From: Chlorokybus atmophyticus
Lineage: Eukaryota > Plantae > Mesostigma and Chlorokybus algae
Direction: 5' to 3'
Assembly: GCA_009103225.1 (NCBI GenBank)
Contig: RHPI01000575.1
Coordinates: forward strand, 233,527 to 297,526
DNA length: 64,000 nt
Under the pieces are notes generated by a model. That model had not been told where the DNA came from and searched no databases. It was given only the letters and a program-made list of their open reading frames with translations. The position numbers were made by a program, and so were the translations under genes. Each line of letters opens with the position of its first letter. Within the stretch, counting starts at the first letter, position 1. Below are positions 2,335-59,294 of the stretch, in pieces.

Positions 2335-3245
2335 TACCGACCATCACTGTAGGTGCTGCCATCTCTGACTCTCCACTCAAGGACCTATACGCTGCACTTC
2401 GTGGCACCTTCCCACTGCAGACCACTAGTAAGGTGGAGGAGTTGAGGCGGTTACGACGTAAGCCCAACGAGGACCCTCTACGCCTGTACTCCCGACTGGA
2501 AGGGCTGTTCAAGGACACTTACTACAAGATCGTCAGTGACGAGGCTGCTGCACTGCTACATGTTAATGAGTTGGATGCCACCCTGAGCGAGTCGACGCGC
2601 CTGACCCTCAATTACAGCAGGCCCCTTGGCTACACGCTCAAGGAAGCTTTCGAGACTGCACAAGCCATCCATAAGCGCTTGGTGTATGAAAAGGCAGTGC
2701 TGAACACCAACCGCAGCGCCTCACGGTTTGTAGCCAGCACAAGCTGAGCCTCCTCGCCGCGAACGTGGCCGGGACGCTTCACCAGCACGCAACAAAGGGA
2801 ACGGTCAGCGCATACTGCTTTGCCTGCCCCTGTGCTGTGTCATCGCTGTGGACGGCATGGGCACTCGAAAAAGGAGTGCACTGAAGAGTATTTTACTCTG
2901 GTCTGCAACTACTGTAGCAAGACAGGCCACTTGGAGTCAGTCTGCTAGCTTAAGTTCCCTGAGTTGAGACCCACCAATAGCTACAAGAGCAACAACACTG
3001 GAGGCCACAACGGCAACAACTCTGGTGGCTACAACAGTAACCATACCGGAGGCCATAACAACACCAACAACTACTCCAACGCTCGTAAGGAAGAGCAAGG
3101 CTACAGGGGGCAGAATCGCCCCCCTCAGCGCAAGGGACTGGAAGGACGTCCGCGCGCTGCTGCTGTTGCCGCCAAGGCTCCAGCCAACCCGTCAGTTGAT
3201 GACCATATGGCTGCCCTTATGGCGCGTATGGCACGCTTGGAGTAA
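2335..3245 (+). pseudogene. gag: Retrotransposon Gag-like ORF remnant (5'-truncated) with two CCHC zinc knuckles
   Basis: About 2836-2948 translates as LCHRCGRHGHSKKECTEEYFTLVCNYCSKTGHLESVC (two C-x2-C-x4-H-x4-C). It is preceded by a capsid-like helical stretch and followed by an Asn/Gly-rich tail; internal stops are present. Confidence 0.8.
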
Positions 3246-3293
3246 GACAAGGAGCAGGACTACCGCGCCTGCTATGCTGCTCGGTAGGCACTG

Positions 3294-5870
3294 ATGGCTC
3301 CAAAGCGCACGAGACACACCGGCACTCCGTCACGCATTCAACCATCCCGACGAGCTCGAGGGGAAGCCGCAACATCGTCAGCAGCCACCTCCTCTGAATC
3401 CACCAGTAGTGCTGCACCAGCAGCAGCTACTTCAGTTGCACCAGAAGTGGGTGTTAAGATTCGGACACTACAGACCATGCATGGAGTTGATGCAAGCACA
3501 AGTACACACACTCTACCAGAGCATACACACAAGGCTGATCCAGAAGGCTTTTTAAGGATTACAACAAAGTCACACCGCGGGCTTTTATACCCGCCAGTTC
3601 TGCACCTGTCTACTCTAGAAGCCACCACGACTTCTACACTCAACCAACTCCTACGCTCTAAGTTGCACCACGTAGCTACTTTCAAGAGCTTTTCAACAAG
3701 CTATGACACGCGCCATACAATGACGTAACCACCGAGCTACAACGTTTCTTCTACAGCGCCTGGAAGTCTCCAGACTCCGGACTCGACTCCGCGCCTGGAA
3801 CCTTCTCGATTGAAGTCCTCGCCGGGACCTTTCTCGACTGGAACCTTCTCGCGCCTGAATTTTCTCGCGGCTATTCTTATCCACAGGGCAAGCTGAACGG
3901 ATACCAGAATATCCTCAACAGTGGGTATATCAGTGAGCACCGCGACGCCAAGACTGGTGAGCGCGCTGGCAACCGCAACTGCTGTCATTGACCCTACAGC
4001 AGTAGGTCGCACCGGTCTCGCTCCAACTGCAGGACCACCTGTGTCAGCGAACGTTGAGACCACTCTCGCGCCACTGAGCGGCACTCTCGAAACCACCGGC
4101 AGTGCCATTGTCCAGTCCGCTGCCACTGCGACGACGCGCGCTGCTACATTGCCCGTCCTCGACGTCACTCAGGCTGTCCCAGGGGGTCAACAAGCTGAGC
4201 GCGCATGGGAGACCATCATGCGGGGAGCAGATTCCACTACCATTGCTTGTGGGCGCGGGGAAGAGCGCACAACTCGCGTTGTACGCAGTGATCGAGTTTT
4301 CCCATGGCCTAAATATCACACCCTGCAAGAACAGACTCAGCGGCAGCTGGAGGATGAATTCCTCGCCGGCACGGCGCCTCCCATATGAGACCGCATTCTT
4401 GTGGTCAGAACACCTGTTGTATTAGAGTTGGCAATACAGTTGTTCTGGACTCTGCATAACAACATGCAGACTGCGCTACGCCAGCCCGCACCAGGCCGTC
4501 ATGAACCTTTCGAGCCAAGCCCGCTGGATACGTGTTGGGACCGGCAACCCAATGTATAGCAGCACATCGCTGATACAGCCGACATGCCTCGAAGTGACAA
4601 CGAAGCACTGAAAACCCTCAATATCGTTCGGCTTCATGAGCGCTACACCGCTCTGAAACAGGCGTTCACCTGGCACAGGACCAAACGGCAGCAATCAATG
4701 CGAGAGCGCAAGCCCTTGCCGCTGCTCGCGCTGTCGTTCTTTAACCAACAGTCGCTGGCCCATCCTCCAGCATGACACCTCTCGTCAGTGAGCCCGACGT
4801 TGACCAGGCGAGAGCGCTGGCCCAACAAACCAGGGGGGTGATCGCCCAGCCGCTACCCGCCTTGTTTGAAGACTTGCCGGACGATCAACAAGTCTAGGGA
4901 GAGGTTACCTCACACCGCAAAAATGGACACAACGAGATGGAGCAGGTTGAATCGGAGAACAGCAACTTCGCACTGCCCTATTGCGACAAGCAATCATGCT
5001 GCACCGACAAGAAGGCATCGGCCTGAGACGGATGTTGGGGATGCGAGAAGGTGGTGATGCAGCTCGAGCAAGACTGGTGACTTGGCTAGTCACCAATGAC
5101 CCCGCAGTCCCCCTGTTCGCATTCGGCACCGGATTGTTCTGGTTGGACGCCTTTCTGCGCTCGCAGCCACTGACACCTTAGAAGGAGCTCAAGAGGCCAT
5201 TCTGAGGTTGCCAGGGGTGGAAGCAGCGCGGCAACACAGACGCATCGCAGCTGCTTATGAGCAGCATGTCGAATAGCCAATGATTAACCTCAATGTGCGG
5301 GCACGAGCAACAACGGTGCTAGAAGTGGGGGTGGTCAATGGCAGATGGGATGCCTACATTGCAGGAAGTTTAAGGGTTCCCACCATTACCCACGACATAA
5401 GAGCGCGGCTTCTATGCGCAGTGTATCTCTAGCCCATGCCTCAGCATCAGCGCTGGAGTGACGTGGTCAACAATCTAACAGCCACATGGGAAGGTACACC
5501 AATCAGGGAGGCAGCTCACGCTGTACGCTGGACTTATGTGGAAGAACAGGCTGCACGGGAGGCGGGCCCACAAACACCCAGTCCTCCAGGGTTTCCATAG
5601 TAGCCATTGGCTACGCCGCCAGGTATGACCTCGGCCACACAAAGGCGCAACCCCCCTGCGCCACAGCCAGGGCAACCACAGGCAGCACCGCCAGCACCCA
5701 GGCCACAGCGTGTATACCAACAGTCAAGACAAGGACGGTTCGGGCCAGGCCGCGGTTAAGAAGGTTCTCAAGACTCAGCTAGTCGAGGGGCGCTTGCTGC
5801 ACTGCGACTCGACACCACCATAGGAGACTGCAGCAGCAGTCACCCCACGCACACGCTACCGATGATGCAA
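3294..5870 (+). pseudogene. Second long Gag-like ORF of the Gypsy element, interrupted by a solo LTR
   Basis: MAPKRTRH...APEVG (3294-3451) rejoins in frame to ISVSTATPR... once the LTR and one TSD are removed. It continues with stops and frameshifts toward the protease. No diagnostic motif was recognised. Confidence 0.55.
3452..3920 (-). mobile_element. Copia-type solo LTR (469 bp) with 5-bp TSD GTGGG
   Basis: TGTTA...TCAACA termini; GTGGG at both 3447-3451 and 3921-3925; the host ORF is restored when it is removed. Confidence 0.93.
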
Positions 5871-5874
5871 GCGG

Positions 5875-6320
5875 TTGCGCATCCACGCCAACGCAGGCAT
5901 GTTCGCCAACCAAGGCAAGCATGTCACTATTAATGGACGAGCACCCAAGCGTGTGATGCTGGACTCTGGAGCCCAGCCTGTCATCATCGGACATTACCTC
6001 GCACTCGACCTTGGCATCACAAGCGCTAAGCTGATGCCGTGCCCATACGTGCTCGACACAGCAACCGGCAGCCGTAACAAGGTGATTGGCATCACTAAGC
6101 AAGCCCTCTGCATTCGCTTGACAGGGGTGGACCCTTCCCACAGAGGTCATACAGAATTGTGTGGTCACCGACGCAGGATCCTTCGACCTGTTGCTGGGAC
6201 AGGACTTCAACTTCCCTATTGGCATGGGGCTGGACTGCTGGACAGAGAAGGCATGGTTTCGTCCCCATTGGGATGAGGAGGATGGAGAGGTTCAAGGATA
6301 TCTGCCTCTTGAGCTGGTGG
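5875..6320 (+). pseudogene. Retropepsin-like aspartic protease domain
   Basis: VTINGRAPKRVMLDSGAQPVIIG (D-S-G catalytic motif) and, after a frameshift, FDLLLGQDF (LLGxDF motif). Confidence 0.85.
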
Positions 6321-6689
6321 CTCGCCCTCGCTCTCACCGAAAGTCAGCTGCATCAGCCACCTACAGGGCGATGTCGACAACCACCGACAGGTCAACTGCG
6401 ACAACCACCCACAGGTTGATCTCGACAACCACTGACAGAGCAGCTGCGGTGGTCACCCACAACTCTGATCAAGAGTCTCCTATCTCATACGACGAGTCTT
6501 AGGGGAAGATGCCACTAAAAAAGTGGCGCACCAGAAACCAGCGGGACGCCGCTGGCGCGCACAGGTGGTCGCACATCTACTACTGACCAGACCACGGCTC
6601 ACTTCACGGTTCCCTATCTACAAGGACCAAGCTGCGGTCAAGGAGCAACACATGGTGGCCACTGGAGTAGTAGAGTTTGACGTATTTCG

Positions 6690-7668
6690 TCGACAACAAG
6701 GCATCACCGTGTTTGAACTATTTGGAGGAATAGGTAGTGGCCTCGCCGCTGTCCTCGACATCGGCGCAACGGTCACTAAGTACTTATATTACTGTGACCC
6801 TTATCCACACAGATTGCCCTGAGCCACCATCTGCGCCACCTACACAAATGCTACCCGCAGCGACTGCCGCTATCAGCACTGCAAGGCAGTCTGAAGACAC
6901 TGCCACAAGACATCCATTTGATCACTGCGGATCACCGCCTGGCGGTGGGCAACAACGGCGTGCTGATAGCAGGATGGGAGTGTCAAGGACACTCCAGAGC
7001 AGGCAGAGGCCAAGGATTCGCTAATCCTCGCTCGCGACTGTTCTCAGAACTGATGCGTATAATCAAAATCCTGCAGAGCAACTAGCTGTCCAGGACTCCA
7101 GGATACATCATCGAGAATGTGCACTTTGAGGACGATAAGCGCAATTACGTGGCCAACAGTTTTCGACAGGTGTGTTCATTACTGGGACACCCTCTCAGTT
7201 TTAACGCAGCGAGTCACGGCTCTCGTGCTCATCGCGTCCGCGCCAAGTGGACCAACCTGGCTACATTTGAGAATCTTTGATGCTAAATATCTGTACAGCA
7301 GTTTTCCACGCAATCTCACCGTCGACGCTATCTTGGACCCTGGGCGCACAACAAAACCAGTCACCCGGCACGATTACCAGCACTTCTACCAGTGCAACCA
7401 GCCTGGTCAACCACATCGTGCGCTCCCCACTCATGTGTCTTACCTAGGATCATACGCCTTTGGCAACCACGGCGAAGGCATGGTGTTGCATTCCAACACA
7501 GACCGACTAGAGGAATCCGACGCACGTGAGCGCGAACGCGCCCTGGGATTCTCTCCAGGCAGTATCATAGGTTCCACACTGACCGACAGTCAGCATTGTC
7601 AGTTGTTGGGACGCGCAGTGGACAAGACCAACATGGTGTGGTTATTGGAGATATGCTTTGCTCACTAG
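6690..7668 (+). pseudogene. C5 cytosine DNA methyltransferase domain embedded in Gypsy pol
   Basis: Motifs appear in canonical order: I ELFGGIGSG (6715), III LPQDIHLI, IV LIAGWECQGHSRAG (Cys codon 6981-6983), VI YIIENV (7113), VIII SRAHRVRAKWTN (about 7225-7255), IX/X ERALGFS...QLLGRAVD (about 7530-7625). Two frameshifts and a TAG at 7083. Confidence 0.88.
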
Positions 7669-7859
7669 GACCGCCATGTGTCCTTCCAGGAGCTCGAACA
7701 CCTGGCGGGGGGGTGGGCTGATCGCGTGCGAGAGACCAAAGCGGCACACGCCCTCGCAATCGCCCATATGGAGGAGCAGGCAGCAGTCACTGTGGAGGAC
7801 ATCCCAGTAGTCGCCAACGCTACCTCTTGGTCCCATGCCACTGGACCACTGGCTACATT

Positions 7860-8720
7860 CTAGACGCGAGAACAACTTGAGGCTCTCCTTAACGAGTATA
7901 GGAGTCAGTTCATCTTCAGAGTGAAGGAACTGAGCGTTGGCTCGGTTTACCAGCTGGACATCGACTTGGTGAACACCGAACGGGTGTTTCGATGACAGTA
8001 TCAACTCTCCAAGTTGGAAGACGATTTGGTGGAGCAGAGGTGCAAGGCTCTGCTGGATGCAAGCCTGGTTGAGGAGTCCACATCGGACTTTGCGGCCGCG
8101 ACCGTCATGCCCGTGAAGAAGGATTCAGCAGGCAACTGGACAGGCCGGCGTATGTGTGGCGACTATCGCCCCCTCAACAACAAAACCAAACAAGACACCA
8201 ATGCCTACTGCAGAGGGTATCTTTAATGATGTAGGAGACTGTACCGTCTTCAGCATCCTGGACATGCGACAAGGGTACAACCAGATCGCCATCAAGGAGA
8301 AGGACAAGGGGCAACCGGCAGCTGTACCAGTGGAAGGTCATGCCCTTTGAACTGAAGAATGCTCTTGCCAAGGTCTAGTGCGTCGTGGACAAAGCTTGAA
8401 GGGGCTGAACTTCGGGCGATGCTACATTGACGACATTCTCATTACCAGCCGAAGCAACAACATCGCTGAGGCCAACTACAGCAGCTACGAGGGGGAGTGC
8501 CTCGCTGCAGTGTGGGCTATCTCCTTCTTCAGACCTGTCCTCTTTGGTCGGCAATACCAGCTGATCACCGATCATCAGCCACTCAAGTGGTTGATGATCA
8601 ACCAACATATGACAGGGAAATCTGCTCGCTAGGCCCTGTTGTTGCAGGAGTATGACTTCGAGATCGACCACCGCGCCGGCCTCACCAACCAAGACGATGA
8701 TGGCCTCAGTCGCAACCCTC
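7860..8720 (+). pseudogene. pol: Gypsy reverse transcriptase fused by internal deletion to the C-terminal half of RNase H
   Basis: SDFAAATVMPVKKD...RMCGDYRPLN, FSILDMRQGYNQI, MPFELKNA and CYIDDILI, followed directly at about 8455 by EANYSSYEGECLAAVW...ITDHQPLKWL...QEYDFEIDHRAG. The RT thumb and RH N-terminus are missing. Confidence 0.9.
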
Positions 8721-8999
8721 ACCTCGTTACCAACGATGCCACCGGAGCTCGGCACGAGCAGCTCGTGCCGAGCTCCCGTGCCGAGCTCGGCCATGCAGCA
8801 GCAGCTCCCACCGTGGCGGCCATGTTTGCTGTTGCCGCGTTACACTCAGGGCGCCAGATCAACATCACCGCCACCTCAACGGCAGAGGAGAGTCCTGTCC
8901 TTGAGTCTATCGTCCCCACAGTGACCACACCCCTAAGGGACGTCCATGCGGTCGACCTTGAAGTCGACGATACTGAGCTGACACCCACCGACACCAGGC

Positions 9000-10260
9000 A
9001 GGACATATACCTGGACAAGCCATCACTCTCCTTCCTGCAAAGTGACCAGCTTCCCTCCGGCATGAGTGCACGAGAGAAAGATTGTGTTAACCAGCGCACC
9101 CGTCACTATCGGTGGGCGGATGACAAGGTGTATCGCTGCGTCCATAATAAGGACAAGGAGGTGCCGACATTAGCCACACGCGAGGGCATCATCGCTGCCC
9201 TCCACACGGAGCTTGGACACTTCGGTGTCAAGCGTACCGTCAGCCTGGTAAGGGCGCAATATTGGTGATATGGGCTGTTCAAACAGGTGCAGGGGTTCGT
9301 CACTTACTGCTAACAGTGTGACATGGTACGCGCCAGCCTCAACACACGCTGCGCCACCTTGCACCCTCTCCCCATCTTCGGTCTTTTCTATCGCTAGGGA
9401 CTCGACATCTTGGGAGACTTGGCACCCCCGGCACGTGGCAACCGCTACATTTTGGTCAGAATCGAGCACTTCTCTAAATGGGTGGAGCTGGTGCCACTAC
9501 CCGACAAGAGTAGTAGGGGGTGGTCTCAAGCCTTCCTCTCCCATTTCCTCAGCCGGTTCGGCAGCTGCGCTGAGGTCATCACCGACCAAGACACTGAGTT
9601 CAGAGGGGAGTTCGACACCCTGTTTGACACATGCTGCATCAATCATCGCCACACTTCACGTGACCACCCCTAAGCCGACGGTCTCGCCGAGCGGACAGTA
9701 CAGATTATCAGAAAGGCACTTCGCAAATACGTGCTGGAGTATGAGAAGACCTGGGACGACCACCTTCCGTAGGTGGCTCTTGAATACCGATTATCAAAAC
9801 AGGCGGCTCTGCGCGAATACAGCCCATACTACCTGCTGTTCGGGCGTCCGCCATTGCTTCCCTTTCGTGCACAGCAGGAAGTAGACCGTGTGGTGAGCAA
9901 CCTCAGCAATCCCGACTGGATGCACCATGACATTACCACACGCGCCACGCTGTTCGAGTACACCGTCCCGATGGCCTTCAACAACCAACATATCGCACAG
10001 CATCGCGACACCCTGCGCTACGAGCGCGTGCGGAGCGGCTTCTACAAGGAGCGCCAACGGCGGGTTCAAGCAAGGGACTTTGCCTACCGCATGGCAGCCA
10101 TTAAGGACACGCTCGACACCTCCGTGGGCCGCACTGTCTACCAGGTCCTCAAGGTGTACCCCACAGGAGTGCTGGACCTCCTCGATCAAAACGGCGAGAG
10201 GTTGAAAGACAACATGGTGAACTGCGCGCCATGTCCTTCCTTACATAGCAGGCTTTGCGC
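9000..10260 (+). pseudogene. pol: Gypsy integrase (HHCC zinc-binding domain, DDE core, C-terminal domain)
   Basis: HTELGHFG...C*QCD; GLDILGDL; YILVRIEHFSKWVELVPLPDK; VITDQDTEF; DHP*ADGLAER; SPYYLLFGRPP. Several in-frame stops. Confidence 0.9.
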
Positions 10261-10295
10261 GCGTCCAGCACCCTCGCCCCGCCCGCAACACACGC

Positions 10296-10460
10296 TGTGA
10301 ACGCTGCGGCAGCGCCGGAGATGACGCACTCATGATGCTCTGCAATGGCTGCAACAAGGGCCTGCATTGCTACTATCCAGAGCCCCCATTGGATGCAATA
10401 CCCTTGGAGGAGTACTGGTGCGACGATTGCCGCACTAACGGTCCTCCTCACCTGCGATAA
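10296..10460 (+). CDS. PHD zinc finger at the integrase C-terminus
   Basis: CERCGSAGDDALMMLCNGCNKGLHCYYPEPPLDAIPLEEYWCDDC fits C4HC3 spacing with LxxPPL and WxCxxC motifs; one ligand Cys reads Tyr here. TAA at 10458-10460. It is in a different frame from the listed ORF. Confidence 0.88.
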   Translation, partial: CERCGSAGDDALMMLCNGCNKGLHCYYPEPPLDAIPLEEYWCDDCRTNGPPHLR

Positions 10461-10522
10461 GAACTGAGCTCCAGAGCTGAAACCTCCCCAGAAACTCAGG
10501 GGGGGGGGGGGGGGGGGGGTGN

Positions 10523-10587
<65 letters not shown>

Positions 10588-11192: not shown

Positions 11193-11626
11193 GGTCGCGC
11201 GCTCGGCACGTCACCGAAGGCCGTTTGCTGCGCTATCGGCGGTCCTTTCCAAAGAATGACCTATTGTAGCCCAACAACGTACGATTTCACATACTTTCAA
11301 TGTATCATTAATAACTGCTTGTTGTACGTGTACTATTGCATATTATTTTGCCAAAAGTCGCATACTTTGTTATTGTGTCCTCGACCCGACAGCTGTCATA
11401 CCTGGTGCCCGCGCATACCAGCCCTATCGAGCATGCCTACATCGAAACCATCGCCCGGCCTACCAGCATACCAGCGCGCGCGCGTCACGGACCAGTAGGT
11501 AGGTCATGACTCCAGAGTAGCTCACGACCATAGCCTACATAGGCACCGCGCGTAGCTGTTCAGTTGTGCGTTCAGCTATAGTTTGTGTTCTATGTCACGT
11601 GAGGATTGCCATGGAGATAGCCACGA

Positions 11627-12890
11627 TATTGATGACACACACACATTGACAAGCACATGCACATGGGTGACATGCTACATCACACTCAGCTTGTATTAAG
11701 GCAACAAGTCCGCGGGTCTTATACCCGCCAGATTCTGCGCCAGATACACACACTGCTGGTCTACAAGCTACACCGTACGATATACTTAACCAAATCCTGT
11801 GCTGTAAGTTGCATCACGTAGCTAACTTCAAGATCTACACAACAAGCTACGCCACATGTTATTCGCCTCTATATCCATCAAGATCCATTGGTTCTTGTAA
11901 GCCTTTGCTCTGCAATCTGCTCGGACCCAGTCCGGAGTCATCGAGGTCCTCTCGTGTATTCCTATGCAAAGGGCAAGCTGACCGGATGTAGGAATACCTT
12001 CAACACTCCCACGCGGGCAGCTTGGCCTTCACCACTCCTTTGTCAATCACGCATGGTGAACTCCCACGCGCTCCTTGCTTCTCTTCTTGGCGACCTTGTG
12101 CGCGATCATGGTTGAACGACACCCGAGCTCCTCGTGCTCCAGCTCTGCCATGCTTCCCATCATTGCTTCAAACCTGTTCACCTTAAAGTTCTTGTTGTCT
12201 TCACCCGCAAGCTTGATCTCCAGCTTGCTCTTCTTCACTTGCACTTGCTGCACATGCTCGTTACCGCCCTTCACTTGCTGCACCTGTCTTCCTTTGAGAG
12301 AACTTTTGCCTTCAGTGATAACCTTGACTTTGTTCTTCACCACCTTTGACACTTTGCTATCAAGCGCTTGCTTGTAGCTTCTTGCAGCTCACACGGGCTC
12401 TGAACTTTCCTCCACAGCAATCTTCTGTGCCTTCATATTGCTATGACCTTGTGGTTTCTTGAACACTTGCTTCTCAACCACCCTTGCCATTGCAGCAACC
12501 ACCTTGTGCTCATTGTCCTCCTCCACGTAATAAAGTCCACCCTTGTTAATGCCGACCAGCTGTATAACACCCCCACGCAGTATCCTAGCCTTGTACATGT
12601 CAAACAGCACTCGCACCAACCCTCGTGGCTACAGGCACTGAGAACAAATTTGCTGATGCACCTGGCACATGCAGTACATCCCTCAGCACAATCTTTCTCA
12701 CTTCGCCACCAACCTTGCACCTAAGGTTGACGTCCCCTTTTGCAACCGCTTGCAACATTGTCTTACTCCAAAAGTCCACCGTGACAGGCTTTGTCAGAAC
12801 AAAAGTAGTTGACGAGTTTGCTCCTGTCGCTGGTGAGATGCCTTGAAGCTCCCGAATCCAGCACCCACTCATGATACTCTACTTTGAGGT
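11627..12890 (-). mobile_element. Truncated non-autonomous Copia derivative (3' LTR, PPT and degenerate pol remnants)
   Basis: The LTR-like block ends CCTTCAACA at 12005 and is followed by the same PPT (CTCCCACGCG on +) as the other Copia elements. Minus-strand remnants VLRDVLHVPGASANLFSV and GLYYVE match the Copia protease/GAG-pre-integrase region. Confidence 0.75.
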
Positions 12891-14761
12891 TAATCAAGCA
12901 TAGCCTATACTACGTCTCCAGAGCCCGAGGGGGGGGAGTGGCTCACAAAGAGAAACACCCCCCACCGGGCATTGCAACACATCATGATCATTGCAGGAGC
13001 ATGGAGAGGGAGCTGGTCGGCGCCTCCCATTCTTCCCACGCGGTGTCTAACGGCAGCAGCAAGGCTTGAGCAGCTGGTAGGCGCAGTCTGTGCGCATGCG
13101 GTAACTCCAATGTGTCAGCTAGGGCAAATGGCGCAGGCGATGGCCGAGCACAGCATCTTAACCCAAGCCACCACTCAACGTTTTTGCTGCAGAGCGACTC
13201 CTCCGGTAACACCAGCGCCTTGGGTGCTTTCTTCAGAGAAAGAAAGCGAGCCTAGCCGTGCGAGCAGGTGCTAAAGAATTGCGCCCGCAAGAGAGAAGGC
13301 AGCGTAGAGGAGAAGAGGCGCTTAGCAACAGAGCGCTGGCGAGGCGAGTTTGGCGAGTGAGCTTTGGCTGCTGGTGCTGCCGTCGGCACTCCGAAAGACG
13401 TGACAACAAATGCATCGGCAGCTTGATGGGCCTGCCTTACCTGTTGAAGGCGACACGCCTGCTGCATCATCAAGCAGCATATTCAAAGATATGCCAGCAG
13501 GCCAACGCGAGGCATGTTGTAACCTCCCTGCTGACGCTGCGGACAATATGCCCGCTGCATCAGCTGTCAGCATGTTCAAAGACATGCCTGCTGCCGAGCC
13601 AGCCTGCCCCGTGTGCTAACGGCACAATGCAAGTAGTGTCAACAGCCGTCACCTATGGGCTGGCGTGCATAAACGGGGAGAGCAGCGCCGTGCGAGAGTG
13701 ACGCCACGCTTAGAGAGCGCTGGGCAAGTGTCGACCCATCATTAAAGTCCGACTTGGTGCACGCTCAAGCAGGTAGTTCTCGCACCTAATGAGTGGGGTC
13801 CAGCGTTGGCCCCCGCTGAGTGGACTGGCAGCAACTTGCTCGTGAAAACGTGTTGTCCATCGTGAGGACCATCATCAAGGACAACTTCGCCATCCTCCTC
13901 TCCGGACCCCTCACCGCCTGAGTGCTGCAGATGGCAAAGAAGAGACCCAATTCTTTCAAGTCTCAATTGAGCGGGTATCCCAGCGCTAGCAAGGTGTTGC
14001 GGATGCAACCCTGAAACCGATCAACCAAAGATGTGGGGTGAGGATGGAAGCGGGGGGAGGCGTTCCACCCTCATGCCCGAGACTTGCCCTACATTAGTAA
14101 GTAACACCCTCGGGGCTAACTCTAAGCGGGGGGAGGGGATAACATCACACGTGATGATAGGTATTAAAAAGATCGAGTGATACACTCCTTCCCAGGCTCT
14201 ATTCCCAACGATAACATCGGATTGGTGTGTCAAAGAGAGGGAGCTGAGCAAATACCTGAGGGGGGTGACCTTGCTCCGGAGGCGCTGTTGCGTGCTGCAT
14301 GCTGGCTTCCTCCTCCTCCTCAACTATGTCGCACTAGGCTCGGGGAGGGCTGACAGCTGGTGGGAAAAGCCAGTGATTGAGCGGAAGCTGCGAGGCAGGA
14401 GGGTCCAAGTGCTTGCTGCCGTCACCAGCTGAAAGGCTGCTTTTCTACTTGCGCTTCATCTCCTACCAGAGAAGATTAAACGCGCTGCGCGTGTTGAAGG
14501 ACAAGCATGCACAAGTAGCTGAGGCAAGCATGGACACACAGAGACAGAGCTACCGCCACCAGATCATACACAAGTCACATCACATTTGTCTATCACAAGT
14601 TGTCCGCTGGTTCTTATACCAGCCAGTTACATACACGTCTACATTTGCAAGCACTGCGTAAGCTATACTTAGCCTTGTGACGCGCTGTCTTCCTTACAAC
14701 TAGAGCTTATTAACAAGCTCTCACACGCCTAATATGAGTAAGTATACGCGGAGATATGAAG

Positions 14762-16813
14762 TGTTGACATACACACGTGCAAGTGACACGCCAACAACAT
14801 CAACACAAGAGCATGACTGCTACTGCCGCCATAGCATCCGCACACATGCTACGTCGTGACCTCTTATCTTCATTGCAACAAGTCTGGGGCTTTATACCCC
14901 GCCAGTCTCTACACACGTCTACATTGGCAAGCACCGCGTGCGCTATACTCAGCCGATTGCTGTTTTGTAAGCTACGCTGTCTAGCTCATAACTAGAGCTT
15001 TCCAACAAGCTAAGCCACGCCTGCTAAGCTTACGTATCCACAAAGCTACGCGATTTCTCCCAAGGCTCTACCAAGCAGCCTGGTCCGGAGTCCGTCATGA
15101 CTCGACCGTCTTGCTAAGTTTGGAGTCCACGCGCTTCTTCCTGGTACCTTCGACCCTCGACTCCTGTATGAAGGGCAAGCTGACCGGATACAAGCATCAC
15201 CCATGTAACACCTTCAACACTCCCACGCGGGCAGCTTGTCCTTCAACATCAGCTCCTCCATTACTCACGCACACCGCTTGCTCTCATGCAAGCCTTCACC
15301 TTTTTTTGTCTCATGCCTCCATGCTTCTCATGGATGATCTTGAAGTCATTCACTTCCACAGCAACTCGAGCCTCATGGTTGACCACCAACCTTGCTCCTT
15401 GCTGTACATACATGTTGCCTTCATGCACCCGCTGCATCTGTCCTCGTTGACAGTGCCTCCGCCGCTGGTATTAGCCCATGACTCCTCTAGTCAACTTGCT
15501 TTCCACCACTTGCAGCTCCCACGGGCTCCGCAATCGCAACCTACTTGTGCCTCCTTGTTGCTCATGACCTTGTGGTATCTTGCAACTCCATCCTCAACCA
15601 CCCTTGTCAATGCAGCAACCTTGCGCACACCATGGCCATCTTCATGTCCACGTCCACATGCTTCTGCGTATAGCCTCCAAGCTTCACACCTCCAGGATGC
15701 TCCATGTCCAGCTTCCAAGTGATCACGCTTCCAGGATGCTCATCACGCTTCCTCGCATGCACCCTCAGCCAAGCACTCCACATGCTTCAACCAAAGTACC
15801 AAGCACTTTACCATGCTTCACCAAGGACTGCCCTTGCTCCCCTTCTCGGAAGGTCCATCAAACACTCCACCGTGCTCGACCTCAAGGGTTGCCATCTGCT
15901 CCCCTTCCTTCCACCAAGCACATTAACGTGCTTACCACGGGTTGCCTCTCGCATTCCTTAAAGCGCTTCACCACGCTCCACCAAGTACTCCTCGCACTCA
16001 GCAACACGAGCTGACATCTTCAGCTCCCACGTATCAAGGACGCCTCCTCTTTCAAGTACTTCACGTACTCTCTTTCAGTCACCAGAAGATCTCCATCATC
16101 TCCTCCTCTTGGTCCATGTACTTCCGCATCTCCTTGTGGGCCAGTAGTAGCTCCATCTTCACACTCCAAGTGTTGTAGTCGTCAACGTCCAGTAGTCCAA
16201 TCGCGATCTTCAAGCCGTCCATGCTGGTGGCCTTGGTTGGTTGCCCTCTCTGCTCACAGACCTCACAACCCCACACTACCACAAAGCAACTACAGTTACA
16301 CATACAATTGTAACACACTCCATCAACCTACACAAGCATGTGTGGGCCCATAACCTGTTGACATACACACGTGCAAGTGACACGCCAACAACATCAACAC
16401 AAGAGCATGACTGCTACTGCCGCCATAGCATCCGCACACATGCTACATCGTGACCTCTTATCTTCATTGCAACAAGTCTGGGGCTTTATACCCCGCCAGT
16501 CTCTACACACGTCTACATTGGCAAGCACCGCGTGCGCTATACTCAGCCGATTGCTGTTCTGTAAGCTACGCTGTCTAGCTCATAACTAGAGCTTTCCAAC
16601 AAGCTAAGCCACGTCTGTTAAGCTTACGTATCCACAAAGCTACGCGATTTCTCCCAAGGCTCTACCAAGCAGCCTGGTCCGGAGTCCGTCATGACTCGAC
16701 CGTCTTGCTAAGTTTGGAGTCCACGCGCTTCTTCCTGGTACCTTCGACCCTCGACTCCTAAATGAAGGGCAAGCTGACCGGATACAAGCATCACCCATGT
16801 AACACCTTCAACA
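14762..16813 (-). mobile_element. Young non-autonomous Copia element (2052 bp) nested in the 3' LTR, TSD TGAAG
   Basis: Two 458-bp LTRs (14762-15219 and 16356-16813) differ at about six positions by eye. TGAAG flanks both sides; PBS at 16341-16355; PPT at 15220. The internal region keeps only a Gag N-terminal stub (LDVDDYNTWSVKMELLL) and decayed pol. Confidence 0.95.
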
Positions 16814-17002: not shown

Positions 17003-20000
17003 TTAAACACAGATGCCAAGTCCTGCGCAACAAGTTTTGAACTTGAGCGGTGACAATGGCTTTGTCATGAAGTTCGCCAGCATGTCTTCAGAATTACAGT
17101 ACTGGAACTCCACCTCTCTCCGTGTGACCCTGTCTCGCACAAAGTGATGCATAACATCAATGTGCTTCGTCCTTGCCGAGGCAATGGGATGCTTTAACAA
17201 CTTGATGGCTCCTTGGTTGTCACAGTTGATGACGACGCACGTGATTGGGTGCTTCAGGTCTGCCTTAAGCTTGCGAAGCCAAAGTGCCTCTTTCGCAGCT
17301 GCTGCCGCTGCCATGTACTCAGCTTCTAATGTAGATGCTGCAGTAGTGGGTTGTAGCCTGCTGTTCCAGCTCACCACGCTTCCGTTTATCTTGAACACGT
17401 AGCCTGTTGTGGACCTCCTGCTGTCGGAGGTCACCAGCAAAGTCCGAGTCGCAGTACCCCTCCAACTGAGTACTCCCGCTCGTAAACTTGATTCCAACTG
17501 TTGCGCTTCCGGCAACATAACGTGGTACTCCCTTTGCAGCTTTCCAATGCTCCATGCTCGGTGCAGACATGTAGCGTGCAAGTACTCCCACAGCATGTGC
17601 AACATCGGGACGTGTGCACACTGCCAGATAGAGCATGCTGCCTACCAGTTCACCGTATGGGTACTGTACCCTGTCGAGTACCTCCTCATTCTTTGCCTTG
17701 ATTAGGGCAATGCCAAGTGCCAGCGGTGTGGTCTTGGTCTTTGCTTCAGTGAGCCCGAACTTGGTGACGAGTCTGCTCACCATTTGCTCCGAACTAATCT
17801 TGATTGTGTGCCGCCCTGTCGCGCTCAACTACCATGCCAAGAAACCACTTGGCCTCTCCAAGATCACTAACTGAGAATGCTTGCTGTGGAGCAAGATTCG
17901 TCTCCTGCAGGTGGTGCACCTGCCTGGCGGTGATGATAATATCATCAACATACACGAGCAGCCAGACCTGGTTGTTTGCATGGATGAAGAGTCCAGAATT
18001 TGCAGAGGATGCGGTGTAGCCAAGTGCCTCAAGCTCTTTGGTGAGCCTAATATGCCACATACGCGGTGCCTGTCGCAGCCCGTATAGTGCCTTGATCAGC
18101 TTGCACGTTGTGCCTCTCTCCCCTTCTTCATGTCCAGGTGGTTGCTCGATGAAGATCTCCTCCAGCTCTCCGTAAAGGAATGCAAGGTGATGTAGCTTTG
18201 GGTCTTCAGCAGCAAGCACAGCTAGCAATGCACGAAAGGTGGTATGCTTACTTGCAGGTGCAAATACTTCGTTGAAGTCCACACCTTCCTGCTGCAAGAA
18301 GCCCTTTTCCACCAGTCTTGCCTTATAGCGCTCAATGTTGCCTTAACCATCATGCTTCACCTTAAAGACCCACTTCACTGGAATGGTCTTCACTCCTTGC
18401 GGAATTTGCTCCAGTGACCAAGTGTTGTTGGCATGGAGTGACGCAATCTCCTCATCCATAGCACGCTGCTATCGCTTCGCATCTGGTGCTAATAATGCCT
18501 CCTCATAGGTGCTTCACTCTGCATACTGGCGACGTATGCCTTTTTGAGAGAGTCTGGAGCTGATCTCTGCCTCCCAGGGTATCTCCGAGCGGCGTGCTCC
18601 TGCTGTAGGTGCGACTGCTTGTCTGCTACATTGGAGTCTTGCTCACCCTTGTCGTCGATGATGGCCTTGCCGGCAACTCCCCATGTCCTTGGAAGTTCCT
18701 CCAGCTGTGCTTCATCTTCATCGCGAGGAAAGAAGCCTGCTTCTGGTTGTGATAATCCCTCGTGGAAAACCATGTCTGTGCTCACGATGATCTTCTGAGT
18801 GTCCTCTTGCAAGATCCTGTAAGCCTTGCAACCCGGCTCACAACCAACGAAGATGCCCTTCTTGCTGACCGGCTCCAACTTGTGCCTGAGCTGTTTAGGC
18901 ACTAGTGCATATGCTGTGCATCCGAATACACGCATACCACTCACATCCAGTGTGGCTCCGTAGAAGAGCTCCCACGGCGTCTTCTGCTTCGAGCTCACCG
19001 GAGACATTGCGGATGTAGTTGGCAGTGAGTACTGCCTGCTTCCTCAAACTATCTTCAATCCATGCATCGTTGAGCATGGCTCGAACACACTCCAAGAGTG
19101 GGTTCGAGCCATGTTAAGGCGTTCAGCTGCTCCATTTCGCTGCGGGGTGTAGGGTGCCGTTGTCTTGTGGCGTATGCCCTTGCTGGCAAAAAACTCCTTG
19201 AACTCCTTGTTGATGTACTCCCCTCCTCGGTCACTCCTTATTGCCTTCATCTTGTTGTCAGACTACGTCTCCAACAAGGCCACGACTGTGCGCACAGCTC
19301 CAGCAACTTCTGACTTGAGCAGCAATGGAAAGATGATGGACAGCTTGCTGTAGTCGTCGAGGAATGTAGCAAAGTATCTGGCCCCTCTCTTTGCCACAAT
19401 GCGCATAGGGTCACAGACATCCATGTGCACAAGCTCGCAAGGATGCTGATTGCTAGAATAGGATAACAGGAATGGCATAGCATGCTGCTTTGCAACAAGG
19501 CATGGTTCACAAAGTGCACCTGATGCATTCTTGAGTTCTTCATTATCGAGATGGATGCCGTTGACCATCTTCTCAGTAACAAGGCAAATGAGGTGGACGT
19601 AGCTCAGATGCCTAAACCTCCGATGCCACAATGTTGGCGACTCCTTGTCCATCACCACCATGGCTTGGATGTTAATGTCTAGAGACTGTTCCACGTGGTA
19701 GAGCCCTCCCGGACCAGCGATTCCAACCGTGCACGACCCCATCTAGAATGACTGAGCAGCCACCCTTCCAAAATAGGATCTCCGTGCCTAAGCGCTCCGC
19801 AACCCTCACAGAGAATAGACTCGCAATAGCCTTAGGAACAGGAGCAGGATGTTGCGTAACAACACCTCGCGTAGTGTGTTACCAACCTTGCAATGGAGTC
19901 GTACGCTGCCAACTCCCTCAGCCATCAATACTTCGCCACTGAAGCCCGCTACCTTCACTGTAGACGTCAGCTTTTTGTAGCTCTCCATCTCTTCTTGTTG

Positions 20001-21008: not shown

Positions 21009-21269
21009 TGTTGAAGGACTAGCATGCACATGTAGCTGAGGCAAGCATGGACACACAGAGACAGAGCTACCGCCACCAGAGCATACACAAGTCACACTTA
21101 TATATTACAAGTTGTCCGCTGGTTCTTATACTAGCCAGTTACATACACGTCTGCATTTGCAAGCACTGCGTAAGCTATACTTAGCCTTGTGACGCGCTGT
21201 CTTCCTTACAACTAGAGCTTATTGACAAGCTCTCACACGCCTAATATGAGTAAGTATACGCGGAGATAC

Positions 21270-46447: not shown

Positions 46448-46928
46448 TCATCGCAACATGGTTTGAGGGGGAGGAGGGCTACTAACAACACCTGTAGCAA
46501 AAAGTGCCATGTCCTTTCTTGGGTTGAGCTCTCGGCTCTTTTGGGCGAGGGCACAGCAGGCGCAGAAGCAGCTGACTAGGCAGTCGTGGCAGGGGGATGC
46601 GCGGAGGGCATGCTTGACCCTAATTTGGTTTCTGATCGCCATCCGGGGGATCCAGCTGAAGGAAGGGCACACGAGGACCCCAACAAGCGCGCCCGCTGTG
46701 CTGAACGTCCCTCCCGAGATAAAGTACAGCACGCACACGCCGGGGCAGCTCCCCCCGCACATTGCGTCGGGCGTGCCCTGCAGTGCCACGTTCTCGCCGT
46801 ACAAGCACGACGGGCAGCAGCACGCGTAGATACCTGGCAGGTTGGTTGGTTGGTTATTTGCCTGAGGCCATGCACTCTCAGAGACACCCCCCCCCTCCCT
46901 CCCCCCCCCCCCCCCCCCNNNNNNNNNN

Positions 46929-46959
<31 letters not shown>

Positions 46960-47755
46960 TGCGCGGCGGGGTTCGAGGCCATTCTCATATGTGTGTGCGT
47001 TTTTGCGAAAACACATGCTCGCATGTTTGTGTTCATGTGTGCATACACCCACGTGCACATGCATAGCGTGCTTGTCCCATCACGCATGCACATATGCCCA
47101 AGTATGCACGCGCATATGCGCAACTGCGAGCACACATCTGCACATATGCAGGCCAACATGCACACACATGTGCACGCACACCTTTGCATACAGTTATGCG
47201 CACTCACGGGCACCCGCTCACACATGCAAGCACACATTCAATATAAGCTCTTACATAGGCCGGGGCCGCCGGGGTTGGTGCAGCTGTCGGAGAGCTCACT
47301 CTGCCACTGGTTGGGTTCGATCTCTGGTGTGTGGGGGGAGACAACCACTACAGGCGGCGCTGTCTGTATAACACGACATACAACACACAGGTCATCAGTA
47401 CAAAAGCCACACCAGACCAATAACCAAATGCATTGTAGGTAGCGGTCTCAAACTGTTGCACTTTATTACTGATGTAAGCAGGTTCATGCACGTTAATCTC
47501 AGATTGCCAGATACTGAGTGTACAGCAGTTCAGGGCTCACCTTGAAGTGCTGTACACACAGGGCTCGTAAGTTGCAAGATGTGCTTATGTCATGCGGCAT
47601 CCTGGCTTTGGCAAGCACAACTTATGGTGCCAGAAACGATATTTTGCAACATACGTTCTTTCAAGGTAGCAATTGCGAGCTAAGTACATTTTTTTCTCAC
47701 CTGATGCACATGTTCTTCTGGAGGTGTGTACTCATAGCCTGGAGCAGTGGGGGCC

Positions 47756-51226: not shown

Positions 51227-52135
<909 letters not shown>

Positions 52136-52207
52136 NCAACTATTCTCATTGACCCCACTGCAGGCTGTACAAAAACCCGTCTCCAGGCCAGCCTCATCTG
52201 TGACGCC

Positions 52208-54232
52208 ATGGCCTCGCTCATGATCGTGCGCCCCTGCACCCCTTCCAAGGCCAGTCTGCCTGTCTACGTGCTGCTTCTTTTGCCAGTCCTTTGCTGCACC
52301 TTCATTGCCGCTGAAGCCGACGCTGCTGCAGGTAAGCAATGGTTATTGCTGGTTGTGCATGTGCATGTGTGCGTGTCTGTGCTGTGTTGTATTGTGTTGT
52401 GTTGTGTTGTGTTGTGTTGTCGCATGCCTGTCAGTAGTAGGGACTGGCAGTGCGCTGGGCAGCTTCGTATTGTAAAGTTGTATCAATGACTGATGGCATC
52501 CGCAGGAGTCATGCTGGCCCATGCAAGCGTTGAGCGGCGCCAGCTATACACCGCCGAATGCAACGGCCAGACGTACAACACCGACGACTACATCTGCTGC
52601 AACAACAGTCTTGATTTCAGACCCGGGCCCTTTAATATCGCCTGCTGCGGAAGTTCTGCCTATGATATGGACGACTACATCTGCTGCAACAACCATCTTG
52701 TAAGCAGGCCCGGGCCCTTTAATATTGCCTGCTGCGGAAGTTCTGCGTATGACATGGACGACCACATCTGCTGCAACAACTTTGTCCAAGCTAACCCCGG
52801 GCCGTTCAACAACGCCTGCTGCGGCAAAGTTGCCTACGACACCAGCAGCCACATCTGCTGCAACAACGTTGTCAACGAAAACTCCGGGCCCTTCAACAAT
52901 GCATGCTGCGGCAGTGTTGCCTACGACAGTAGCAGCCACATCTGCTGCAACAACGTCGTGAAAGACAACCCCGGACTCTTCGACAATGCGTGCTGCGGCA
53001 GCGTTGCCTACGTGACAACGGACAACTACATCTGCTGCAACAACAATCTTGTAAGCAAGCCCGGGCCCACTGACATCGCCTGCTGCAACAGTATCGCCTA
53101 CGAGACCAGCACTCACCTCTGCTGCAACAACGTTATCCAAGCAAACCCCGGGCCTTCTAACAACGCCTGCTGCGGCAGTATTGCCTATGATACCAGCACC
53201 CACATCTGCTGCAATAATGTTGTGAACAACAATCCCGGGCCCTTCAACAACGCGTGCTGCGGCAGTATTGCCTACGACACAATGGGTGACGATATCTGCT
53301 GCAACAACAAACTTCTAAGCAAGCCCGGGCCCGCTAATATCGCCTGCTGCAAAAGTACTGCCTATGACACCAGCACCCACATTTGCTGCAACAACGTTGT
53401 CCAAGCAAACCCCGGGCCCTTTAACAACGCCTGCTGCGGCAAAGTTGCCTACGACAGCAGCAGCCACATCTGCTGCAACAACGTTGTTCAAGACAACCGC
53501 GGGCCTATCAACAATGCGTGCTGCGGTGGTGTTGCCTACGACACCAGCAGCCACATCTGCTGCAACAACGTTGTCCAAGACAACCCCGGGCCTATCAACA
53601 ATGCGTGCTGCGGCGGTGTTGCCTACGACACCAGCAGCCACATCTGCTGCAACAATGTCGTGAGAGACAACCCCGGGCCCTTCAACAACGCGTGCTGCGG
53701 CAGTATTGCCTATGTTACGACGGACAACTACATCTGCTGCAACAACAATCTTGTAAGTAAGCCCGGGCCCGTCAACAGTGCCTGCTGCAGCGGTACTGCC
53801 TATGACACCAGCACCCACATCTGCTGCAACAACATTCTCAGAAACAACCCCGGGCCCTTTGACAACGCCTGCTGCGGCAGTGTTGCCTACGACACCAGCA
53901 GCCACATCTGCTGCAATAATATTCTCAGAGAAAACCCCGGGCCCTCTGACAACGCCTGCTGCGGCAGTGTTGCCTACGACTCCAGCAGCCACATCTGCTG
54001 CGTTGACGTTGTGAGAGTGTTTCCCGGGCCCTATGACAATGCGTGCTGCGGCAGGGTTGCCTACGACATCAGCAGCCACATCTGCTGCAACAACATTGTT
54101 CTAGAGGCGCCCCCCAACGCCGCCTGCTGTGGCAATACTGCCTACGACTCCATCAACTCCGTCTGCTCCAAAGGTCCTTCTCCTCCTCCTCCTCCTCCTC
54201 CCCCTCCTCCTCCTCCTCCTCCGGAACTCTAG
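52208..54232 (+). CDS. Large secreted galaxin-like di-cysteine repeat protein, about 616 aa; exons 52208-52331 and 52506-54232
   Basis: The signal-peptide exon is homologous to 26662-26779; phase-1 intron; 18 repeats of about 29 aa (YDTSSHICCNNVVQDNPGPFNNACCGSVA); poly-Pro tail ending PEL. Confidence 0.92.
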
Positions 54233-58941: not shown

Positions 58942-59037
<96 letters not shown>

Positions 59038-59294
59038 NAAGGCCCCCGTTCAAAGATTAAGTGCGGGTGTTCTAATTGGGGAATAGGGGGCAATTTGTCA
59101 GATCACACTATAAGCGCACCGATTCGGTGCGCTTATACTGAATCTATCACACGGAATTAAGTATTAAACTATAGCAGCGTACATCACTGCCATTAGAAAC
59201 TTCGATAAACAAAAAGAAACGTGCTAAAATACAATGATTCTAACTTAAATATCATAAATGTACCCCCCCCCCCCCCCCCNCCCCCCCCCCCCCC

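Follow-up and report, generated by a model that had tools for sequence, protein, structure and literature searches.

A 64,000-nucleotide stretch of the genome of the streptophyte alga Chlorokybus atmophyticus (contig RHPI01000575.1 of assembly GCA_009103225.1, positions 233,527 to 297,526 of the forward strand; hereafter the window) carries at positions 2341-10457 of its plus strand what we read as a degenerate Ty3/Gypsy-type retrotransposon copy, in whose family a C5 DNA methyltransferase (DNMT) and a PHD finger are shared traits. We put the probability of this reading at roughly 80%. Six-frame reading combined with Pfam searches of the open pieces gives the following order on the plus strand: a gag region with two CCHC knuckles, a spacer, an aspartic protease (PR), the DNMT, reverse transcriptase (RT), RNase H (RH), a DDE integrase (IN) and the PHD finger. 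By tblastn the element is collinear with intact public polyproteins, among them P0185, a protein of 2358 residues with an identical domain order. When the intact polyproteins P0178 and P0185 are aligned to the window, they reach E-values of 1.9e-92 and 2.9e-91 over DNMT plus RT, a similarity that by this measure lies well past chance. Judged from sequence, DNMT and PHD finger are regular equipment of the pol polyprotein in a green-algal Gypsy lineage that includes the window copy.

How well can the backbone be assigned? The pol order typical of Ty3/Gypsy elements, PR-RT-RNase H-IN with RT_RNaseH, an rve-type DDE integrase and an H2C2 finger, is found in the window, and it is this integrase with its H2C2 finger, not the tyrosine recombinase of DIRS elements, that was detected. 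Neither the C-terminal part of the integrase in the window (9773-10457) nor the C-termini of the relatives contain a chromodomain by Pfam; the PHD finger sits in that place. An initial annotation, made from the letters of the window alone, had located a C5-type DNMT inside pol between protease and RT as well as a PHD finger at the end of the integrase, and had proposed HMMER searches as a check. Both domains are confirmed: the DNMT motifs follow one another in order from 6712 to 7623, between the LDSGA of the protease and the YIDD of RT, with a match to PF00145, and the finger matches PF00628 over 10221-10457 with 27.2 bits (E 4e-6, cut-off 24). These searches were run on the open pieces one by one instead of on a frame-corrected pol; they matched PF00145, rve and PHD. 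The RT pieces find no Pfam match by themselves and are recognized by their alignment with P0185 and P0178, where they fall on the RVT_1 regions. For alignments and trees the broken domains of the window were read through, with an X at every break. Gypsy elements with a Dnmt3 have been known as a kind since 2018, and the window copy is itself an ordinary, dead member.

The DNMT domain spans 6631-7665 and displays its motifs I to X in canonical order: motif I (FELFGGIGSG, 6712-6741), motif IV (GWECQGHSRAG, 6972-7004), motif VI (IIENV, 7107-7121), motif VIII (AHRVRAKWTN, 7227-7256), the segment ALPTHV (7420-7437), motif IX (RERERALGF, 7525-7551) and motif X (LLGRAVD, 7603-7623). Two frameshifts (near 6800 and around 7280-7310) and one stop (7083) interrupt it. 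The open piece with motif IV, 6798-7082, scores 30.7 bits with PF00145 (E 2.7e-7, cut-off 22) and is matched by M.HhaI in the PDB at E 0.003. An alignment of the DNMT domains of 26 intact relatives (A1) shows invariant columns in motifs I (F and G), IV (C-Q), VI (E-N), VIII (R-x-R), IX (E-x-E-G) and X (G-x3-D), all of which are readable in the window. Across about 80 relatives the catalytic motifs are kept at about 35-45% identity. The features of a competent C5 methyltransferase, that is, the S-adenosylmethionine-binding FxGxG, the catalytic Cys, ENV, RxR and motifs IX and X, are present in the window save for the proline of motif IV, in a frame that is broken.

To which type does this enzyme belong? 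Searched against the PDB, the A1 profile has DNMT3A as its best match (E 1.2e-24), followed by DNMT3C and DNMT3B, plant DRM (7e-14), M.HhaI (6e-10) and DNMT2; DNMT1 is not among the matches at E ≤0.001. The alignments to DRM are permuted, as they should be with a query that is not rearranged. An AlphaFold model of the DNMT domain of P0185 (predicted local distance difference test 93.8, predicted template-modelling score 0.92) was used for a fold search, in which the best 50 PDB matches are all catalytic domains of DNMT3A, B or C, the best of them with an E-value of 3e-20 and a template-modelling score of 0.83 (by target). The sequence profile of the relatives and the modelled fold of P0185 together identify the predicted enzyme as Dnmt3-type and non-rearranged.

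At the other end of pol, a linker and the PHD finger occupy 10236-10457 and align by tblastn to residues 2280-2350 of P0185. The segment is entered via a frameshift near 10232 and closes at a natural stop at 10458. Its first Cys lies at 10296 and its last CxxC at 10419-10430, so that the coordinates of the C4HC3 finger proposed earlier, 10296-10430, hold, as does the Pfam score. The ligand pattern holds for seven of the eight zinc ligands: ligands 1-5, 7 and 8 are in place, and the sixth is a Tyr (HCYY, where relatives have HxxC), as seen in an alignment with the fingers of 28 relatives. In the relatives' own fingers all eight ligands are invariant (profile A2, 22 fingers). The best PDB matches of this profile are CHD4, KMT2C/D, KDM5A/B/Lid, PHF12, ATXR5, WSTF, DPF3, KAT6A, BAZ2A/B, PHF21A, UHRF1 and AIRE, with E-values from 7e-25 to about 1e-13 for CHD4, KMT2C/D, KDM5, ATXR5, BAZ2, PHF21A, UHRF1 and AIRE, and none of the 60 matches listed is a reader with a K4me3 cage such as ING, BPTF or TAF3. 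Most of these matched fingers read an H3 tail whose K4 or R2 is unmodified. By its profile the finger of the element resembles the subclass of readers of unmodified H3K4 (H3K4me0), the type of CHD4, the first PHD of KDM5, BHC80 and AIRE, which lacks the aromatic K4me3 cage. As such, PHD fingers have been seen on retrotransposons before.

The relatives of the window element are numerous. A full-library phmmer search with the 95-residue motif IV piece yields 339 proteins at E ≤0.001, and the long ones among them are Gypsy polyproteins. A homologue search with the 211-residue piece 8633-9265, within a length range that does not reach polyproteins, gave no match. BLAST and Pfam domain mapping divides the relatives into two layouts. 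The first, PR-DNMT-RT-RH-IN, comprises named proteins of four Closterium strains and many metagenome contigs; the second, RT-RH-DNMT-IN-PHD, is found in Haematococcus lacustris, Hariotina reticulata and likewise many metagenome contigs. One protein of the second layout (P0198) is filed in NCBI under a metagenome-assembled genome named 'Minisyncoccia bacterium', presumably as a eukaryotic contamination. A terminal PHD finger also occurs with the PR-DNMT-RT layout, namely in P0185, in the P0195 and P0239 clusters and in a clade of elements with two open reading frames (ORFs). In P0185 all parts, by Pfam PR, DNA_methylase, RVT_1, RNaseH, H2C2, rve and PHD, lie in one intact ORF. The residue behind the Cys-Gln of motif IV separates the layouts, with CQG in PR-DNMT-RT and CQD in RH-DNMT-IN.

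The two-ORF clade is exemplified by the metagenome element L005, in which ORF1 (gag-PR-DNMT) ends in a TAG and is followed in frame by ORF2 (RT-RH-IN-PHD). This end of ORF1 is conserved over about 15 diverged relatives. The leaky stop motif of the tobamovirus type reads UAG-CAR-YYA, and the context of the TAG in L005 (UAG CAA UCA, within 4790-4815) fits it. The TAGs at 7666 and 7861 of the window were considered as programmed leaky stops of the same kind, but their contexts differ and their positions cannot be aligned with that of L005, and the idea is kept as no more than a lead. Some relatives also show repeats of their own. A Closterium relative (L002) has a pair of 248-bp direct repeats just after the integrase (14616-14863 and 15534-15781). 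Two intact metagenome relatives, L001 and L004, consist of head-to-tail tandem units (8043 bp at 100% identity and 8262 bp at 99.8%, respectively) without an internal repeat resembling a long terminal repeat (LTR); these could be true arrays, circular forms or assembly cycles.

Maximum-likelihood trees place the window within one of the two layouts. The window and the rows with PR-DNMT-RT layout fall into a single clade in the DNMT tree (SH-aLRT support 99), in the RT-RH tree (99, with one long-branch intruder) and in the IN tree (98, with the long-branch row P0195 of the same layout outside). As the three markers agree, the position of the DNMT within pol would have changed once. In the IN tree the PR-DNMT-RT clade is placed among the RH-DNMT-IN rows. 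Members with a PHD finger stand at the base of this clade and its crown (Closterium, P0155, P0162-P0167) is devoid of it; a single loss of an ancestral finger within the clade fits these data, which are no proof of it. A wider scenario can be drawn from here, in which one ancient Gypsy clade of the green lineage, spanning Chlorokybus, Closterium, Haematococcus and Hariotina, would go back to a single capture of a Dnmt3, with one move between the RH/IN and PR/RT positions in either direction and an ancestral pairing with a PHD finger of the H3K4me0-reader type. We offer it tentatively and consider it distinctly less than an even bet. Neither a single capture of a Dnmt3, nor a single move of the DNMT, nor an ancestral pairing with the PHD finger was found in print, and all three reach further than the 2018 report, which covers one species.

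The remaining coding parts of the copy can be followed with the intact relatives as a guide. Gag lies at 2341-3242 with a capsid-like part and two CCHC zinc knuckles (2838-2879 and 2904-2945; Pfam zf-CCHC, E 2.6e-6). Its segment 2364-2981 matches the gag of Closterium and metagenome relatives by tblastn with E-values down to 6e-11, and two in-frame stops interrupt it (2745 and 2946). The protease (5827-6349, LDSGA at 5959-5973) matches Asp_protease_2 with E 8.7e-6, aligns to residues 632-801 of P0185 and contains one stop and one frameshift. RT (7873-8470), recognized by tblastn to P0185, P0178 and ORF2 of L005, shows LDMRQGYNQ at 8258-8284 and YIDD at 8423-8434; it is broken by stops at 7993 and 8348 and shifts frame near 8190. 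Behind YIDD about 150 residues have been deleted: the alignment to P0185 breaks after residue 1563 (the high-scoring segment runs to 1572) and restarts at 1717. The C-terminal part of RNase H is left at 8435-8770 (RT_RNaseH, E 1.5e-15; also by tblastn). The integrase (8984-10234) is composed of the H2C2 finger from about 9176 (Integrase_H2C2, E 2.1e-5), the rve core at about 9434-9670 (E 9.7e-6) and a C-terminal domain; it forms a single tblastn segment with residues 1717-2278 of P0185 at 43% identity and has in-frame stops at 9266, 9311, 9395, 9671 and 9770.

In all, the coding path contains 14 in-frame stops and no fewer than six frameshifts, which together with the deletion after YIDD bear out the initial verdict that this copy is dead. 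It is a fossil without a function of its own. A near-perfect palindrome of 41 bp lies in its linker between RNase H and integrase (8740-8780), and another of 65 bp at 1587-1651.

Where does the copy begin and end? The limits first given for it, 3294 and 10587, had to be revised, as gag lies upstream of the former and the element begins near 2341, while the latter marks the end of a poly-G/N tract and the natural stop of pol is at 10458. The left limit is abutted by an LTR-like repeat copy of about 465 bp on the minus strand, R(-) at 1872-2334, which is inverted relative to 3452-3920 and shares 89.5% identity over 465 bp with 3452-3915. Contigs of public sequencing runs, compared at a likeness of at least 80%, help to interpret this region. 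The stretch has relatives in two of these runs (X1 and X2) and none in two others; no RNA run containing it was found. Loose ends of the run contigs show that other genomic copies diverge from the window just left of 2341, and the sequence upstream of this point in those copies has no match anywhere in the window, so the 5' part of the window copy is missing rather than displaced.

Between gag and protease lies a solo LTR, R(+), of 469 bp on the plus strand (3452-3920, TGTT...AACA), which is flanked by a 5-bp target-site duplication GTGGG (3447-3451 and 3921-3925). One run contig connects 3448 to 3929 and skips it. R(+) was rejected as the element's own 5' LTR, because it has a target-site duplication of its own and some copies are without it. 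The spacer proper (3926-5826, plus strand) has no ORF and is multi-copy in the genome, with run contigs at family-level depth. Contigs from X1 and X2 cover 2341-7700 including the spacer at multi-copy depth, and a joint from 3318 to 4104 with a depth of 55 connects gag with the spacer in other copies. From this cover and the joints 3318 to 4104 and 3448 to 3929, the spacer is assigned to the family in the source organism. On the 3' side a poly-G tract with one N (10499-10585) is probably an assembly artefact, and contiguity beyond it is uncertain. Past the tract, R3 (11557-12005, plus strand) is a diverged LTR-like copy that ends in TCAACA and is 66-78% identical to R, its start near 11557 being extrapolated, not aligned; it may be a remnant of the 3' repeat or another solo LTR. 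No tRNA gene that would hint at a primer-binding site was found, and Rfam matches nothing in the window.

Several observations weigh against our reading of the element. Neither paired LTRs nor split direct repeats enclose the copy, which leaves it without defined ends; given its age and the poly-G/N tract on its 3' side, this tells of the copy and not of the family. The spacer of about 1.9 kb finds no match in Pfam and none by tblastn to the relatives. The trees of DNMT, IN and RT-RH were built without an outgroup. No protein of Klebsormidium is among the homologue, cluster or representative matches, so that KnitGypsy-Dnmt3 of Klebsormidium nitens, the published Gypsy element with a Dnmt3, enters here by description. 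The DNMT of that element produced no methylation in yeast, a test which is the only published one of a Gypsy-Dnmt3 and which its authors, in the available text, call inconclusive (PMC5890265). Finally, the residue preceding the catalytic Cys, elsewhere a near-universal Pro, is Glu in the window (ECQ instead of PCQ) and in 44 of the 80 relatives scored.

The last two points feed the most serious alternative, namely that the module is no working DNA methyltransferase and serves instead to bind DNA or RNA, to methylate RNA or to act as a decoy for host silencing factors. RNA methylation has indeed been raised, in the available text for the DNMT of SymbioLINE, a dinoflagellate long interspersed nuclear element, and not for the Gypsy enzyme (PMC5890265). 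Yet human DNMT3B was likewise inactive in the same yeast assay according to that text (PMC5890265). The Glu, in turn, is not confined to one branch: PR-DNMT-RT rows split into 22 ECQG and 15 PCQG, and RH-DNMT-IN rows into 21 ECQD and 20 PCQD. As Pro and Glu alternate within both clades, the site looks tolerant and its change no sign of inactivation. The catalytic Cys, the Glu of ENV, RxR, FxG and motifs IX and X are invariant or nearly so over both layouts at about 40% identity, which suggests selection on catalysis, and the modelled DNMT of a relative has the DNMT3 catalytic fold. We regard a module without DNA methyltransferase activity as unlikely.

A different objection concerns the integrity of the copy: gag (2341-3242) and pol (5827-10457) might be of different origin, from separate copies or separate elements, and have been joined by nested insertion, rearrangement or mis-assembly. 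The distance from the knuckles of gag to the protease is about 2.9 kb, compared with about 0.65 kb in P0185; the spacer lacks homology to the relatives and a solo LTR lies within the interval, inverted LTR-like copies flank gag, and the poly-G/N tracts suggest trouble in the assembly. On the other hand, in contigs of two runs the depth is multi-copy and similar over gag, spacer and pol, with the joints described above making gag and spacer neighbours elsewhere, and the length of the gag-PR linker varies among relatives from about 215 to 500 residues. Gag and pol further share a strand, follow each other in the expected order and both find their nearest relatives in the PR-DNMT-RT layout. A composite is in our view quite improbable; gag and pol probably belong to a single element.

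That the DNMT is a secondary insertion private to the window copy, whether a piece of a host DNMT3 gene or a different mobile element, has nothing in its favour except that the domain has a frameshift at either end. It conflicts with the same segment at the same site in dozens of intact relatives, with the nesting of the window DNMT in the clade of PR-DNMT-RT enzymes, and with the lack of any target duplication or repeat around it, and we consider it as good as refuted.

What might such an element do while alive? In live members of the lineage the polyprotein would be made, in one sister clade with the conserved in-frame stop splitting gag-PR-DNMT from RT-RH-IN-PHD; since the DNMT lies upstream of that stop, it would there be made in gag-like amounts. 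The enzyme would accompany the replication complex and methylate de novo the new cDNA or the DNA round the integration site. The PHD finger, for its part, would tether the intasome to chromatin without H3K4 methylation, that is, away from active promoters. This would be the same kind of chromatin that cellular DNMT3 is licensed to methylate via its ADD, a PHD-like module. A self-methylation of cDNA has been proposed for DIRS elements in the available text of the 2018 paper (PMC5890265). Taken as a whole, self or target methylation plus integration steered by the finger is a mechanism that we consider possible, somewhat short of even odds. As for the host, the ratio of observed to expected CpG is 0.67-0.82 over most of the window but 1.1 in its first 1.8 kb, compared with 1.0-1.4 for GpC; this deficit would agree with a degree of CpG methylation in the germline of the alga.

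Transposons are usually silenced by DNA methylation, and a transposon that carries its own DNMT3 inverts this relationship. With the window, Chlorokybus, from one of the earliest branches of the streptophytes, joins the hosts of DNMT3-bearing elements, and the same element lineage is found in Closterium and in chlorophytes, with the DNMT at two alternative sites of pol. In this lineage a histone-reader finger on the integrase appears to be the rule and not the exception, and the pairing of reader and writer is widespread among the relatives. If enzyme and reader work as proposed, these elements would choose chromatin with unmethylated H3K4 and write 5-methylcytosine on themselves, a transposon-borne analogue of the reader-writer logic of cellular DNMT3 that would bear on the co-evolution of methylation landscapes and transposons in the green lineage. 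The intact P0185 and L005 provide testable constructs. What is new lies at the level of the family, in that a PHD finger accompanies the DNMT, that the DNMT takes two positions and that such elements are spread across green algae, and is offered here as a case and not as an established result.

The rest of the window holds further traces of mobile DNA. The LTR-like family of about 465 bp (TGTT...AACA) recurs at 14604-15197, 16423-16791 and 21029-21269, and local duplications lie downstream of the element (14492-14756 and 21009-21268, 94%; 14762-15219 and 16356-16813, 98.7%). Another Gypsy-type integrase fragment at 19116-19424 on the minus strand shares 27-35% identity with the integrase core of the relatives. 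Further poly-G or poly-C tracts at 46887-46961, 58943-59047 and 59263-59294, several with a single N, resemble artefacts of assembly or polishing and may mark false joins. An intron-less ORF of 579 residues at 52493-54232 (plus strand) contains seven galaxin-like repeats (Pfam PF24748, E 7.6e-166), and long ORFs that overlap each other on the two strands at 51473-52489 point to further repeat sequence in its neighbourhood.

How does the element compare with known systems? The initial annotation had named de Mendoza et al. (2018) as a precedent in charophytes, and this paper does describe KnitGypsy-Dnmt3 in Klebsormidium nitens (PMC5890265). It had also not taken the exact layout for that of a described family. 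The available text and supplements of the 2018 paper mention no PHD finger, but Gypsy elements with a Dnmt3 were published there as a kind. A preprint of 2026 names the class 'streptophyte Gypsy-DNMT3' (10.64898/2026.05.21.726589). Literature searches returned nothing on Gypsy-DNMT elements in Chlorokybus or, in a search on green algae, in chlorophytes, Closterium not having been searched for; the names KnitGypsy-Dnmt3 and Gypsy-DNMT3 were each found in a single paper.

Going by the available description, KnitGypsy-Dnmt3 is close in kind: like the window element it has an LTR/Gypsy-type pol that encloses an intron-less, non-rearranged Dnmt3-type DNMT, and it comes from a streptophyte alga (PMC5890265). 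A PHD finger like that of the window element is not mentioned in its description, and DIRS-like repeats are reported for KnitGypsy-Dnmt3, none of which were found in the window copy. SymbioDIRS-Dnmt3 of the Symbiodiniaceae also carries a Dnmt3-type domain within the pol of a retrotransposon, and de novo CG methylation in yeast has been demonstrated for it, again following the available text (PMC5890265). In contrast to the window element it is built on a DIRS backbone, where a tyrosine recombinase takes the place of the DDE integrase, belongs to dinoflagellates and represents an independent acquisition. The EpiLTRs of Cymbomonas and Euglena come near in another respect, since they combine a writer of DNA methylation and a chromatin reader in one LTR element (10.64898/2026.05.21.726589). 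Their DNMT, however, is sister to DNMT4 and follows the rest of pol at its 3' end; a chromodomain acts as the reader, and an adenine methyltransferase (DAM) comes in addition.

Two further parallels concern the reader. Chromoviruses bear a histone-tail reader on the C-terminus of their integrase, which presumably steers integration as proposed here; theirs is a chromodomain, whereas the PHD finger of the window element resembles readers of unmodified H3K4 and not those of methylated H3K9. In the cell, DNMT3A, DNMT3B and DNMT3L with their ADD pair the Dnmt3 catalytic fold with a zinc-finger reader of the K4-unmethylated H3 tail, much as the element seems to do. Yet the cellular ADD adjoins the enzyme, while in the element the DNMT and a plain PHD finger stand far apart, with RT, RNase H and integrase between them and without a PWWP domain.

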